Made by a program: the position numbers and the translations under genes. Positions 1,941-15,851 of a stretch of 64,000 nt of DNA are shown here, piece by piece (position 1 is the first letter of the stretch; each line of letters begins with the position of its first letter). Source of the DNA: Hemiscyllium ocellatum (Eukaryota); NCBI RefSeq assembly GCF_020745735.1, contig NW_026867487.1, positions 4,543,239 through 4,607,238 of the forward strand. Reading direction: 5' to 3'. Below the pieces are notes generated by a model that saw only the letters and a list, made by a program, of their open reading frames with translations, was not told where the DNA came from and ran no database searches.

Positions 1941-1979
1941 TAATTGCCCCTCTGGAGACTCTTAGTTAGAATAAATGAG
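1941..1979 (+). promoter_or_regulatory. Conserved proximal promoter of GPCR-1: TAATTG + O/E-like cctctggaga + AATAAAT
   Basis: ctctggagactcttagttagaataaatgag starts 100 bp before the ATG; a near-identical motif lies 98 bp before the ATG of GPCR-2. Confidence 0.5.
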
Positions 1980-2049
1980 GGATACCTCGAACCTGTCTCA
2001 GAGCTGAAGTGTGGAAATACGGTAATCCTTACAATCACTGGAAACAAAG

Positions 2050-2119
2050 ATGCATGGGCCAGCAAATGGGCTGTTCTTTGCAATTTTCTATCCACTTCTT
2101 GCTCTCATTGGTGCACCCG
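2050..2119 (+). CDS. GPR139/GPR142-like class A GPCR, paralog 1, exon 1 (MHGPANGLFFAIFYPLLALIGAP)
   Basis: ATG at 2050, 70 nt, then a G|gtaagt donor (phase 1). Encodes the first half of TM1 and is homologous to exon 1 of paralog 2. Confidence 0.85.
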
Positions 2120-3473
2120 GTAAGTAATCTATTCCAACTCAGTTTTGTTTTTATTCTTCATATACATTTGCACTTTGCCTTCAGGATCTGGCTGAACATC
2201 AGCAATATCCAATGTTTTGTTTGAATAACGGAATTCAACCACATCCCCATATAAAATCACAATATATGACGTAGTATTCTGTTAAATGAGTTCATTACTT
2301 GAACTTGCACTGTGGAGCATAGAATATTATTCATTATATTGTGGAACAATTTTATAAAATCATTATTTGTTAGATTCCTGACGCATGTGACAAAAAAATT
2401 GTTATTTCTGTGACTATTATTTTTATTAATATTTTCTTATAATGCATTAAGATACACTCCAACGTATTTAATGTGATGTGCAATAGTAGTATTAAATGTC
2501 ATGAATGTGTGACGTTATTAATGTCATCTTAAGAATTCGTGAAAAAGCAATAAATGTTTGCTGTTGAAAGACTTTAAATTATTTCACATTTTGACTTGCC
2601 CTGGTAGATTTTGAAATTTGGCTGTTATTTTGAGTAGCTCCATTTTCCCATATATTGTAGACATGTATTTTGCTGGTCAAGATTACGTGGATTGATGACG
2701 TTTTGCTTTCACTGGAAAAGTCGCTTTACAGTTGTTTCTCTAATCAGTGCAGTAGATAAAATGGGGATGCATCAGAGGTGGTGCAACAAATAAACGTGAC
2801 AGAGAAACACACAAAGAAAAATTAGTAGGGGCAACTTAAAGCTTGGATAAACGGTTACATTAAGGGGGAAGACCTACAGAAGGGAGGAGAGAGGCAATCA
2901 TTGGAGAACGGAATTTAAACGCTTACAGCCTAAACTTTAAACACGTTTACAACTCTAATGAGATTCTTTAGTCCCAGGGATGTGCAAGTGAACAGCATTG
3001 GTGGGACAATGTGATATTAAATCTTTGCCTAAGTATACAGGAATCGGCGTGACTGTGGAAAACTTTGAAACTCAGTTGTAAAGGTAATTAAAACCAGACT
3101 TTGTCAGATAGAAAGGCAATGTCGGTCAGCGAGTGAAGGATTTTTGTATGAATTGGGCATGGAATATTTAAAGCTATGGGCACCATATATATAGAATGAG
3201 ATTCAATTGGATACTTAGCTTTAGGTGTTGTCTCAGTGATCAGAGAGTAGATCATGTAACAGAGAAGATTACAGTGACTCCTGCATTATCAAATGTTTAA
3301 TCCAGCAATGGATATCGAGCAATTACCAATGATTTTGAAATGCTCTAAATTTGGGTCTGTTTCTGAGCGTGGAAATTCGATGCATTTGGACGCTTCCAGT
3401 GCCAGTCTATATGCAGTTGGTGTTTGAAGTTTGTTTAGTATCATCTCTCTCTCTCTCTCTTCATCTTCCATAG

Positions 3474-4375
3474 CAAACGTCTTAGCGATTATTATCTTAT
3501 CCCAAGGACGCTGTGGTCTCTCCCGATGCATCACCTACTACCTACTGGCCATAGCGGTTGCTGATTTCTTTGTTATCATCACTGGGTGTATCCTCAACAG
3601 GATTGGCCGCATCTATTTTAGCTACAGCGTTTTGTCCACCACCCCTGGCTGCAGCCTCAGTGCTGTGCTGGTCTACATCACGCGGGATTGTTCTGTCTGG
3701 TTGACAGTAGCATTCACCTTCGACCGTTTTGTTGCCATCTGCTGCCAGAGTCTGAAGACCAGATACTGCACTGAGAAAACTGCGTCACTAGTCATAGGGC
3801 TGATCTGTGTCCTGCTCTGTATCAAGAACGTCCCTTTATACTTCATCTACAAGCCCATGTACATACTGGATACAGTGCCCTGGTTCTGTGATATCAAAAC
3901 GATCTTCCACAATTCACCCACTTGGCAGGTCTACCGATATTTAAACCATGTCTTAATCCCCTTTCTCCCCTTCCTCCTCATTCTGCTGCTCAACGCTCTG
4001 ACTGTAAGACACATCTTAGCGGCCAGCAGAGCCCGCAAGAGACTCCGTGGAACAAGAAATAATGAAGACTCAGAGATGGCAAACCGCAAGAAATCCATTG
4101 TCCTCCTCTTTGCCATCTCTCTCAGTTTCCTCCTCTTGTGGGTCACTTACATCGCACGGTTTCTCCACAGAATGGTTACCGGTGAAGAGTACGTTGGCAA
4201 ACGGAACTTCAATGATCCCAAGTACATTCTTCAAGAGACAACAAACATGCTTACATTACTCAGCTCCTGCAACAACATTGTCATCTACGTGGTGTCACAG
4301 AGCATGTTCCGGGAAGAACTCAAGAAAATCCTGATGTGTCCCCTACGAATGTTCACTGTCAGCACAAAACAGTAG
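3474..4375 (+). CDS. GPR139/GPR142-like class A GPCR, paralog 1, exon 2 (spliced protein 323 aa)
   Basis: (CT)n polypyrimidine tract and tag acceptor at 3471-3473, phase matches exon 1. 7TM motifs: YLLAIAVAD (TM2), SVWLTVAFTFDRFVAIC (TM3), PFLLILLLNALTVRHI (TM5), LLSSCNNIVIY (TM7). Confidence 0.92.
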
Positions 4376-13230: not shown

Positions 13231-13300
13231 ATGCACGGGCCAGTGAAAGGATTGTTTTATGCTATTTGCTACCCCATTATCGCTGCTGTTGGTTTCCCAG
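13231..13300 (+). CDS. GPR139/GPR142-like GPCR, paralog 2, exon 1 (MHGPVKGLFYAICYPIIAAVGFP)
   Basis: accATG, 70 nt, CAG|gtaaga donor, phase 1; same structure as paralog 1. Confidence 0.85.
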
Positions 13301-13852
13301 GTAAGAAATGTGCTGCAAAGGAAGTTTGAATTTATGCATAAATCTCCATTCCTTTTGATAACTGGGTTGGATATTATTCTCTAAGATTCAATCCTCTTTA
13401 AATGGGAATGGACAGAAACTGGGCCATGAAGTGGTATTATCATACACTTCTTACAGCGTATTGTATGCTATTTTATTGCAAAAGGGTGAAATGAAGTGCA
13501 TTGCTTGCGCTTGAATCAATAGGAAATGCAACATTACATTCAAAGTGTTCTATTGCACATTTCATCAACAACAGTTTCTGAGATAACGTTTATTATGAAG
13601 AGTGTCTACAGCATTGTCTGAATAATCATATGTTAATTTGTTTGGTATTGAATTTTATTCTGAAATAGTATAACGTTGAATCATGTAGCAATGTATAAAA
13701 GTGCAGTTTCTGGCATTGATCTGTTTGTGTTAACATTGACGTGGAGACCAAGTTATAAGAAAGCTGAATCATGGAGAAAGATGAATGAGCCAATTGGACT
13801 ACCCCAACTCCTATTGCCTATGTATTGAAGATTGAATGACTACAGCACAATA

Positions 13853-13989
13853 NNNNNNNNNNNNNNNNNNNNNNNNNNNNNNNNNNNNNNNNNNNNNNNN
13901 NNNNNNNNNNNNNNNNNNNNNNNNNNNNNNNNNNNNNNNNNNNNNNNNNNNNNNNNNNNNNNNNNNNNNNNNNNNNNNNNNNNNNNNNN
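13853..13989. other. Assembly gap (137 N) inside the GPCR-2 intron
   Basis: Run of N. Confidence 0.99.
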
Positions 13990-14955
13990 GTGAATCTAGA
14001 AAATCGTTACGCGAACTCAAAAATGGTACAACTATTCTAGAATCTTGTGTTGTTTTTGGGCAGTCTCTAAAGTCTTAAGAATTAATTATAGAAAAGTTAC
14101 ATAAAGGTGAAATAAGAAGATAATAGATTTCCATCTCTTCATAAATTGTCTGATAATGCTAGCTTTTGTGCATTTGGCATTTATTTTGGATACTTGTGTT
14201 GGTTATCCTTCCACAAGTTATGATGATTACTGTCAAGCGATTTTAGAAAGACAATTGATGTAGAACTTCGCAAAGAGACTTTGGGCAAAAAAAGAAAGAT
14301 CACGATTAAAAATGTTTGGAGTTAAGGAATGTCCGGAAGGAAGACATGAGAAGTGCTACAGAAAGGAAGTTCCACAATTTGGGACATCAGCAGCAAAAGT
14401 CACAGCAGGAGTGATTAACATCAGGCTTAAAAATGGTAGGAATGCAGTTATTTTGAGATAAATTATTGTAACAGCATGTGAGTTCTGAATCTATGTGGTT
14501 TTTAAATTATTAACGATGTGCTTATTAAAGCTGAGAAGTTACAGGCCCTGTGCTAATGTCCCTCAGCTAACTTAGATCTTCAAAGAATAAGTCTAGGTAT
14601 GGAGACGTGATGTGTCACATGATTTTGCTCATATATTACTTTAGATAGCTCGTCACCGGAATTAAGCCAGAGACTGAAGAACAGCATTGGTAGAAGCAGA
14701 CGCTGACTGCAATGTTCCTGACATTGCCAAATGTTTACTTCAGCATGAAATGCTGAACAAATACAAATTATTTTTGTTAAGTTGGAGGCTGGAGAGAACA
14801 CAGGCTCGGACAAGGAGGGTTTCAGTGTCGGTTGGCTTAGGCAGTTGCTGATGTTTGAACTCAACTGGGCAACACCCAACTGATAAAAGTGCATGTGATG
14901 TAAAGTATAGGTATTGTAATTTATATTGTTCAAGTAAACTTTATGTTTGTCACAG

Positions 14956-15851
14956 CCAACTTGGTGTCAATTATAATACTATCCCGAGGACGGTGTGGGC
15001 TCTCCAAATGTGTAACCTACTATCTAGTGGCAATAGCTGTGTCCGATTTTTTTGTCATCATCACTGGGTGCATCCTAAATCGGATCAGCCGCATCTACTT
15101 TATTTACAGCGTATTGTCCACTACCTCTGTATGCAAACTGAGCACAATCCTGGCCCGCTGCAGCCGAGAGGGCTCAGTCTGGCTGACTGTGGCCTTCACA
15201 TTCGACCGTTTTGTGTCCATCTGCTGCCAGAGCCTGAAGATTGGATACTGCACCGTGAAAATTGCGTCGCTGCTCATTGGAATGACCTGCATCCTGAGTT
15301 GTGTCAAAAACTTCCCTTTATACAATATCCTCAAACCTTTATATATTCTGAATGGTCTACCCTGGTTATGTGACATCAAATCCATCTTTTTTACTTTACC
15401 TGCCTGGCAGGCCTATGATTGGATGGAACACATTTTAACCCCCATTCTCCCTTTTCTCCTCATTCTGCTGCTTAATGCCTTGACTGTACGGCATATCCTG
15501 GCCGCCAGCAAAGCAAGGAAGAAACTTCGAAATGTTGAGTCTGGTCGAGACCCAGAGGTGGAAAGTCGCAGGAGATCCATCATCCTGCTCTTTGCCATCT
15601 CGGTCAGCTTCCTGCTGCTGTGGGCCACCGAAGTGGGACATTTCTTCCTCGTACGGTTTAAAGGTGATACAGACTTCAACGGCCTGGATTTCCAAAACGT
15701 TGACTACATCTTGCAAGAGACCAATAACATGTTCCAGCTACTTAGTTCCTGCAACAACGTATTCATTTATGCAGTATCTCAGAGTAGGTTCCGTAGGGAG
15801 CTCCAGAAGATTCTCATGTGTCCTTTCACCATACTCACAGTAAAATTGTAG
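14956..15851 (+). CDS. GPR139/GPR142-like GPCR, paralog 2, exon 2 (spliced protein 321 aa)
   Basis: cacag acceptor with matching phase; SVWLTVAFTFDRFVSIC, PFLLILLLNALTVRHI, LLSSCNNVFIY; collinear with paralog 1. Confidence 0.92.

Follow-up and report, generated by a model that had tools for sequence, protein, structure and literature searches.

A conserved module of about 44 bases stands at a fixed distance ahead of the start codons in a family of shark receptor genes. We consider it likely that this module is a proximal promoter for RNA polymerase II, specific to the family, of the TATA type and kept by selection, with a 27-base motif as its core. The window, which is the whole stretch of 64,000 nucleotides of Hemiscyllium ocellatum DNA that was analysed, contains two intact, two-exon class A GPCR genes, g1 and g2, with products of 323 and 321 amino acids, respectively. 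The features are listed below by their positions in the window.

1901-1919, plus strand: distal conserved element of g1, a forkhead-like T-rich run and GAACTG (aligned columns of 10 shark promoters)
1941-1946, plus strand: homeodomain-type core TAATTG of g1 (mean pairwise identity 0.73; whale shark and zebra shark paralogues have it at the same place)
1947-1961, plus strand: conserved upstream element of g1, CCCCTCTGGAGACTC, with the dyad core CTC-NN-GAG (mean pairwise identity 0.78; the highest-information columns of the module)
1970-1976, plus strand: TATA-like box AATAAAT of g1 (identity 0.84 over 10 genes)
1997-2003, plus strand: initiator-like CTCAGAG of g1, with a predicted transcription start near 2000 (conserved cA.A column 29-30 bases past the TATA-like box)
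2050-2119, plus strand: g1 coding exon 1, 23 codons and 1 base (ATG at 2050, GT donor at 2120; tblastn)
3474-4375, plus strand: g1 coding exon 2 including the stop codon (AG acceptor at 3472-3473; 7tm_1, E 7.4e-22)
13088-13104, plus strand: distal conserved element of g2, TGTTTATTGAACTGTAA
13130-13144, plus strand: conserved upstream element of g2, TCTCTCTGGAGACTC, with TAATTG missing ahead of it
13153-13159, plus strand: TATA-like box AATAAAT of g2
13231-13300, plus strand: g2 coding exon 1
13301-14955, plus strand: g2 intron (GT at 13301, AG at 14954-14955), containing the assembly gap 13853-13989
14956-15851, plus strand: g2 coding exon 2 including the stop codon
25771-25943, minus strand: decayed promoter module (25943-25900; PWM score 15.6) and exon-1 relic, ATG lost, open through to a GTAAG donor
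29383-29721, minus strand: pseudogene fragment of the same receptor family, TM6-TM7 (tblastn, 33-36% identity; in-frame stop codons)

The assembly gap lies wholly within the g2 intron, so no reading frame spans it. Among the fetched loci, the nearest relative of the g2 promoter and exon 1 is zebra shark L008, which is also the nearest relative of g2 exon 2. This agreement is consistent with the two halves on either side of the gap being one gene.

The initial annotation of this DNA had placed a shared motif 100 and 98 bases ahead of the ATG in the two intact receptors, and both distances are exact. The 27-base pattern CTCTGGAGACTCTYAGKTAGAATAAAT has exact plus-strand matches at 1950-1976 and 13133-13159, counted from motif start to ATG as 100 bases in g1 and 98 bases in g2. 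The shuffled window gave zero matches to it even when three mismatches were tolerated. This motif forms the core of the module, which reads TAATTG, then YCCCTCTGGAGACT, then AATAAAT. In g1, TAATTG ends three bases ahead of the 27-base motif, where the annotation had seen it. It is absent at g2, which has AATTTAGC in its place, and at L006. Exact TAATTG occurs in five of the ten intact shark genes and two of the five skate genes; eight of the ten shark genes have it within one mismatch. All ten intact shark genes carry AATAAAT or a one-base variant, and in the matching region 5' of the ATG the skate paralogues show boxes of the canonical TATAAA type. The distal element gives the column pattern t.TTt.TTcA...aa.tg.Aa across the ten shark promoters, and the skate genes have a similar TTTGTTC..GAAACTG. 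AATAAAT is a non-canonical TATA box, which counts against a promoter function.

Our comparison covered 16 promoters of four species, and a single shark order contributed 11 of them; the fetched loci came from whale shark, zebra shark and little skate. In 10/10 intact genes of three orectolobiform sharks, the module occupies -108 to -113 relative to the ATG. When 545,316 positions were scanned with a PWM, scores above 34 bits were found only at those ten sites (34-60 for the intact genes), which are also the sites on which the matrix was trained. Scores between 12 and 34 bits came only from degraded copies before two exon-1 relics and from two skate genes. The upstream element is missing in three of the five skate genes. 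A metagenome scan with the motif returned five matches, all attributable to chance and without a receptor in their vicinity.

The module decays where the gene has died. It is degraded ahead of all three pseudogene relics, and in the frameshifted copy L007b neither the homeodomain part nor the TATA part is left. Over the module, the genes share a mean pairwise identity of 0.66, and over its cores 0.73-0.84, compared with 0.27-0.30 in the upstream flank and intron. BLASTN of paralogue against paralogue detects a single block, running from the motif through the end of exon 1. The claim that the flanking non-coding DNA has diverged thus holds. Since dS among the same genes is 0.8-1.4, neutral DNA between the paralogues is saturated.

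These values bear on a simpler account, in which the similarity is unselected and reflects recent duplication or gene conversion among tandem copies. The two genes and their kin are indeed tandem paralogues, and exon 1 is a high-copy word set in DNA runs of other species (word depth about 100, against 5-13 in single-copy flanks). However, one consensus is common to three species, dS between copies is 0.8-1.4, flank and intron identity is at background, and the module is degraded exactly where a gene is dead. Unselected similarity is already contradicted by these observations, and we give it almost no weight.

Our preferred explanation, a selected promoter, can be laid out as a gene unit. Its 5' part would contain the distal T-rich/GAACTG element, TAATTG in most copies, and the upstream element of 13-15 bases, YCCCTCTGGAGACT. 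The core would consist of the TATA-like AATAAAT, an initiator-like CAGAG about 30 bases downstream, and a 5' UTR of about 50 bases. The coding part would comprise a first coding exon of 70 bases, an intron of about 1.2 to 3.9 kb, and the main coding exon. Each tandem duplication would have copied the whole unit, and purifying selection would then have retained the module in working copies. On this arrangement of sites, TBP and activators would bind the module, transcription would start near the initiator-like element, at about 2000 in g1 and 13183 in g2, and the paralogues may be co-expressed. Retention of the module in working copies suggests that the paralogues share one activator set, most likely in the same cell type or types. 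Because the same block of about 44 bases is found in every intact relative sampled from two other sharks, the receptor family is probably under one common set of factors.

We also weighed whether the conserved block is transcribed, either as the start of an internal exon (acceptor CTCTYAG) after a non-coding leader exon or as an RNA element in the 5' UTR. The sequences CTCTTAG in g1 and CTCTCAG in g2 look like acceptor ends, and conservation at a lower level runs on from the block to the ATG. The YAG is variable, however, with CTCTCAC, CTCTGAC, CTCCCAC and CTAACAT in other genes, and GGAGA interrupts the pyrimidine tract. The best-conserved parts (TAATTG, the dyad and AATAAAT) fit DNA-binding sites, and a transcribed block would give seven of the ten modules an added upstream ATG. 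A transcribed block is therefore very unlikely in our judgement, and its splice-acceptor version was rejected because the YAG is not conserved. That CTCTYAG can be read as a weak acceptor still counts against the promoter interpretation. An ATG lies inside the module in 7/10 genes; these would be upstream start codons were the block transcribed, which supports that interpretation.

Reads provided a view of the locus in other species. Over 12700-13852, contigs of two other species cover upstream DNA and intron, so those runs are DNA. Among the within-motif differences listed from these contigs, the only position is 13149. All sequencing runs that matched these genes are genomic DNA, including the four whose reads were placed on the locus, and two small runs labelled as RNA contained no matching words.

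A special case of the promoter explanation had been put forward in the initial annotation. In this case, TAATTG would bind an Lhx2-type homeodomain protein and the adjoining element an EBF (O/E) dimer, driving sparse expression in chemosensory neurons. Several features are in its favor. TAATTG is directly next to the upstream element in most copies, and the element has a 4-2-4 dyad geometry like that of a COE site, for which the consensus is TCCCNNGGGA (PMC5498135, PMC4312928). Mouse composite sites such as TAATTGATCTCCAAGGAA (the Sfaktiria EMSA probe) and TAATTAGGCCATCAGGAG (Lipsi) provide a precedent, and runs of pyrimidines and of purines are stated to be accepted in the Ebf parts of such composites (Monahan et al. 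2017, PMC5608512). Odorant receptor promoters combine O/E, homeodomain and TBP motifs (PMC12547500), and OR and TAAR genes are very few in sharks.

The details of the upstream element argue against EBF. The best match to TCCCNNGGGA has one mismatch in one gene, two in six and three in three, and matches with at most two mismatches occur by chance at 2.8 per kb of the same DNA. The central NN, which an EBF dimer leaves free, reads TC without exception, and all genes have T or C at the G7 position. Instead of CCC/GGG, the dyad made up by the invariant bases is CTC-NN-GAG. Relative to the two mouse sites, the EBF-like register is one base nearer to TAATTG, or one base further in the other register, and a 2-base insertion impairs the mouse composite (PMC5608512). 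TAATTG itself is missing in g2 and L006. The O/E assignment of the upstream element is thus weak, and we regard the Lhx2/EBF case as unlikely. Among the parts of an olfactory-receptor-style promoter, TAATTG (8/10 within one mismatch) and the TATA-like box are present in the OR style (PMC12547500); the O/E site is a weak candidate. Two other candidates for this element were a CTCF-like site read on the reverse strand and the promoter palindrome TCTCGCGAGA. Neither fits the invariant bases.

The receptors belong to class A by their PF00001 (7tm_1) match (E 7.4e-22) and by a predicted structure with seven long helices and helix 8 (mean pLDDT 88.6). FDRF, which represents the D/E-R-Y-type motif closing TM3, and the toggle W6.48 are invariant in 69 members. 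We compared a family profile with solved structures. GPR139 was the best match, with 72 bits over 308 positions (E 3.7e-19), followed by the PrRP and NMU receptors at no more than 51 bits (E 1e-12); GPR142 lay outside this comparison. The affinity to GPR139 was visible only with the profile and not from a single-sequence search. We found more than 2,000 predicted proteins in about twenty elasmobranch species, a great expansion of the family in this group. The description of the genes as GPR139-like and expanded was therefore sound as far as solved receptors go. g1 is 86% identical to its Hemiscyllium counterpart.

The suggestion that the family senses amino acids fared less well. The agonist pocket of GPR139 is formed by E108, F109, H187, W241, R244 and N271 (PMC7318219), for which the family carries V/I, Y/F, D, W, Y and N, respectively. 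Three of the six are kept: an aromatic side chain at position 3x33, W at 6x48 and N at 7x38. In place of E108, H187 and R244 the family shows V/I, D and Y; with E108 and R244, both charged or polar partners are gone. An acidic residue stands at 5.42 in the family, which makes amines as well as amino acids candidate ligands. The proline that is usual in TM7 is missing from GPR139 and the family alike, with N-x-F-x-Y in each. GPR139 has two exons (PMC7318219) and the family two coding exons, a likeness of exon count. In contrast to the hundreds of fast-evolving copies in the shark family, GPR139 is a single conserved gene with 92% identity between human and chicken. With dN/dS at 0.12-0.22, nothing points to positive selection acting on the genes as a whole. 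Variability is higher in the outer than in the inner halves of the helices (entropy 1.14 vs 0.78, p 1.6e-4), a pattern suggestive of ligand diversification, yet common among GPCR families.

The family is absent from the chemoreceptor literature that we searched, and the shark literature we searched does not mention it. In their main text, the catshark papers mention neither this family nor orphan GPCRs in the olfactory epithelium. Among olfactory receptor families, only V2R is known to matter in sharks, with about 32 genes in the catshark. The GPR139-related family may be a sensory receptor repertoire of sharks and rays that has gone unrecognised, with chemosensation as its most plausible role and the homeodomain-plus-dyad module serving cell-type-specific and perhaps one-receptor-per-cell expression, in parallel with OR genes. 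We hold this broader proposal to be speculative and on balance doubtful. If it were true, the family would be larger than the set of about 32 catshark V2R genes. The 44-base module can serve as a probe for every member of the family and for the true first exon, which is absent from many public gene models. It is also a defined DNA bait for identifying the activators. A shared promoter module would predict co-regulation of the paralogues in one cell type and would make the biology of this receptor family testable.

The layout of the module can be compared with that of known gene arrays. The protocadherin CSE, the immunoglobulin V octamer and V1R promoters each place a short conserved element at a fixed distance ahead of every member of a tandem array. 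The shark module resembles these systems in its fixed-distance layout and differs from them in sequences and factors. Mouse OR proximal promoters (PMC12547500) are a further parallel: they are AT-rich and of TATA type, they carry a homeodomain site together with another activator site no more than about 60 bases from the start, and they serve a large tandem GPCR family. Unlike in OR promoters, the second site of the module is not a convincing O/E site, and the coding region here is split by an intron. The shark module also varies far less, in sequence and in position, than is described for OR promoters. The Lhx2/Ebf composite of the Greek Islands (PMC5608512) likewise places TAATTG or TAATTA beside a pyrimidine run followed by a purine run, and the left half of the Sfaktiria site, TCTC, is the same as that of g2. 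The spacing differs by one base, as judged on two mouse examples. The mouse composite motif is reported to be enriched in enhancers and not in promoters (PMC12547500).

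A probable family-wide promoter module is what this analysis adds to g1 (GPCR-1 of the initial annotation) and g2, the two intact, two-exon class A GPCR genes in the window. Their coding exons lie as follows.

2050-2119, + strand: g1 coding exon 1, 70 bases
3474-4375, + strand: g1 main exon, preceded by a GT-AG intron; product 323 aa
13231-13300 and 14956-15851, + strand: g2 coding exons; product 321 aa

The g1 and g2 products share 64.5% of their residues, and the rhodopsin-family profile recognizes them (E 7.4e-22). An assembly gap (13853-13989) falls within the g2 intron and is therefore crossed by no frame. 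Among the fetched loci, the zebra shark locus L008 is the nearest relative of g2 both to the left of the gap (promoter and exon 1) and to its right (exon 2), with 70% identity over 275 bases of DNA, 78% in exon 1 and 68% in exon 2. This shared kinship fits both sides belonging to one gene and does not prove continuity. Many public gene models of the family (P0001, P0002, P0037) lack the 70-base first exon. Some are 298 aa long and named GPR15-like; in others its place is taken by read-through of the intron or by an extension upstream, as at the N-terminus of P0002. The P0037 model is 386 aa long; its true exon 1 lies at L007:10828.

The 27-base motif reported upstream of both genes has just two copies in the window (1950-1976 and 13133-13159), and shuffles of the window searched for it gave zero matches. 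Both copies are exact and stand 100 (g1) and 98 (g2) bases from the ATG, the near-equal distance originally described. The TAATTG noted before g1 was found at 1941-1946, ahead of this gene only and not g2. We fetched nine loci holding relatives (five whale shark, two zebra shark, two little skate) and located every exon 1. The motif is the core of a module of ~44 bases, which 10 of 10 intact genes from three orectolobiform sharks carry at positions -108 to -113 relative to the ATG, with the consensus tTaATTg.cCCTCtgGAGACTctcA....gAATAAATgA.gGA. A both-strand scan of 545,316 positions with a matrix built from these ten sites put only the ten above 34 bits; their own scores are circular, as they trained the matrix, and the informative part is the absence of other high scorers. 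Four sites scored 12-20 bits. Two precede exon-1 relics (L001:21434, and window 25943 on the - strand, where the ATG is gone), and two precede skate genes that retain TAATTG and TCTCTGTGGA. The original observation is confirmed, and it extends to every intact orectolobiform gene fetched and, in part, to skate genes.

Mean pairwise identity is 0.66 across the module (TAATTG, 0.73; upstream element, 0.78; TATA-like box, 0.84); the upstream flank and the intron reach 0.27-0.30. Among module-bearing genes, dS is 0.8-1.4. The window holds two live family members and at least two dead ones.

25771-25943, - strand: dead family copy found in the matrix scan; decayed promoter and exon-1 relic, ATG lost
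29383-29721, - strand: dead family copy; separate TM6-TM7 fragment with stop codons

L007b, a further dead copy with a frameshift, retains neither the homeodomain nor the TATA part. Because the module is conserved despite saturated neutral divergence and decayed in dead copies, these comparisons indicate a DNA element under purifying selection. The same saturation and decay disfavor recent duplication or gene conversion as the source of the likeness. The promoter block would have been duplicated along with each gene copy and then retained through selection.

In our reading, the block is a proximal promoter of the TATA type that carries two or three putative activator sites. AATAAAT, the 3' part of the module, sits at the TATA-box position, and in skate paralogues the matching stretch ahead of the ATG contains canonical TATAAA-type boxes. 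An initiator-like CAGAG is conserved 29-30 bases downstream of AATAAAT (g1: 1997-2003); this spacing predicts transcription starts near 2000 (g1) and 13183 (g2), and a 5' UTR of ~50 bases. Upstream of AATAAAT lies the most conserved element, YCCCTCTGGAGACT, whose invariant core is a CTC-NN-GAG dyad and which TAATTG immediately precedes in most copies. Farther upstream is a T-rich/GAACTG element.

1901-1919 and 13088-13104, + strand: forkhead-like T-rich run, then GAACTG, ~45-75 bases before the module, conserved in sharks

This element is recognizable in three or four of the 5 skate genes (L005, L009) and may be older than the 27-base motif. An ATG is present inside 7/10 modules, which argues against the conserved block lying within the mRNA. 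The YAG of g1 and g2 was considered as a splice acceptor and rejected, as it is not kept in other genes. Some skate paralogues (L005:9740-10000, L009:9740-10000) carry two ATTGG (inverted CCAAT) boxes in place of the homeodomain/dyad pair, followed by a canonical TATA box, so subfamilies are not alike in promoter type. A promoter held in common, with its start site placed by inference, would imply that the paralogues are co-regulated.

A single family sequence matches GPR139 no better than rhodopsin or GPR21. Against solved receptors, a 69-member profile places GPR139 clearly first (E 3.7e-19, 72 bits; next match 1e-12). The family genes have two coding exons and GPR139 is a two-exon gene; both receptors lack the TM7 proline. 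We mapped the published GPR139 agonist pocket onto the alignment with a validated numbering offset, all six named residues falling on the right letters. The family keeps an aromatic at 3x33, W at 6x48 and N at 7x38, and replaces E108 with V/I, H187 with D and R244 with Y. From this pocket pattern and the profile kinship, we conclude that the family is a distant GPR139 relative; the suggestion that it senses aromatic amino acids gained no support, with E108, H187 and R244 replaced. Position 5.42 (profile position 181, alignment A2; eight positions N-terminal to the invariant TM5 proline) is Asp in 54/69 members, Glu in g2 (E of WMEHI) and Asn in g1 (N of YLNHV). Asp5.42 is the non-classical amine-recognition residue in teleost olfactory TAARs (PMC4695389), a parallel that hints at cationic or amine ligands.

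The g1 protein shares 95% identity with a C. punctatum protein and 86% with a Hemiscyllium protein. Overall dN/dS in the family is 0.12-0.22, helix outer halves vary more than inner halves, and we regard the family as fast-evolving. The family may be expressed in sensory neurons, as first proposed; among the sequencing runs searched, no RNA run contained these genes, and in the runs that do contain them coverage spans the intron and upstream DNA. The literature searched contained no mention of the family in sharks. In DNA runs X18 and X23, from two other species, g2 exon 1 (window 13230-13308) lies on short contigs at word depth ~80-100, and neighboring single-copy DNA is at 5-13; exon-1 words there seem to be nearly the same across many paralogues. 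The 9 kb separating g1 and g2 is retroelement debris (noted at 5309-9808), and zinc-finger ORFs lie downstream of the cluster.

5309-6076, - strand, and 6052-6564, + strand: inverted pair of near-identical ORFs within the debris
8243-9808: reverse-transcriptase-like ORFs within the debris
30991-31977, - strand: long tandem C2H2 zinc-finger ORF, 328 aa
50115-51095, + strand: long tandem C2H2 zinc-finger ORF, 326 aa

In whale shark, a gene encoding two V-set immunoglobulin domains (L003:18026-22541) lies 5.5 kb from a family member. In mammals, OR genes flank the TRA loci.

The olfactory-receptor-style promoter first proposed is partly supported: the data fit a shared TATA-type promoter with a homeodomain site, belonging to an expanded GPR139-related family, and the O/E (EBF) assignment is weak. 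An O/E plus homeodomain pair would be one particular form of the proposed promoter and would not contradict that reading, and we consider it unlikely. The dyad shares its 4-2-4 geometry with the COE consensus TCCCNNGGGA (PMC5498135, PMC4312928), but in the best register one gene shows 1 mismatch, six show 2 and three show 3, and matches with at most 2 mismatches arise by chance at 2.8 per kb in the fetched loci. In the module, the central base pair of positions, which EBF does not constrain, is invariant TC, and the position expected to be G is never G in the module genes. Monahan et al. reported that the Ebf part of OR-enhancer composites tolerates pyrimidine/purine runs, with the spacing to the Lhx2 site fixed. 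At the sequence level, the likeness of the g1 site (TAATTGCCCCTCTGGAGA) to the mouse composites Sfaktiria (the EMSA probe, TAATTGATCTCCAAGGAA) and Lipsi (TAATTAGGCCATCAGGAG) is real. However, whichever of the two registers is taken, the EBF-like site is shifted by one base relative to the mouse sites, a two-base insertion already impairs the mouse composite (Monahan et al.), and the composite was reported from enhancers, not promoters.
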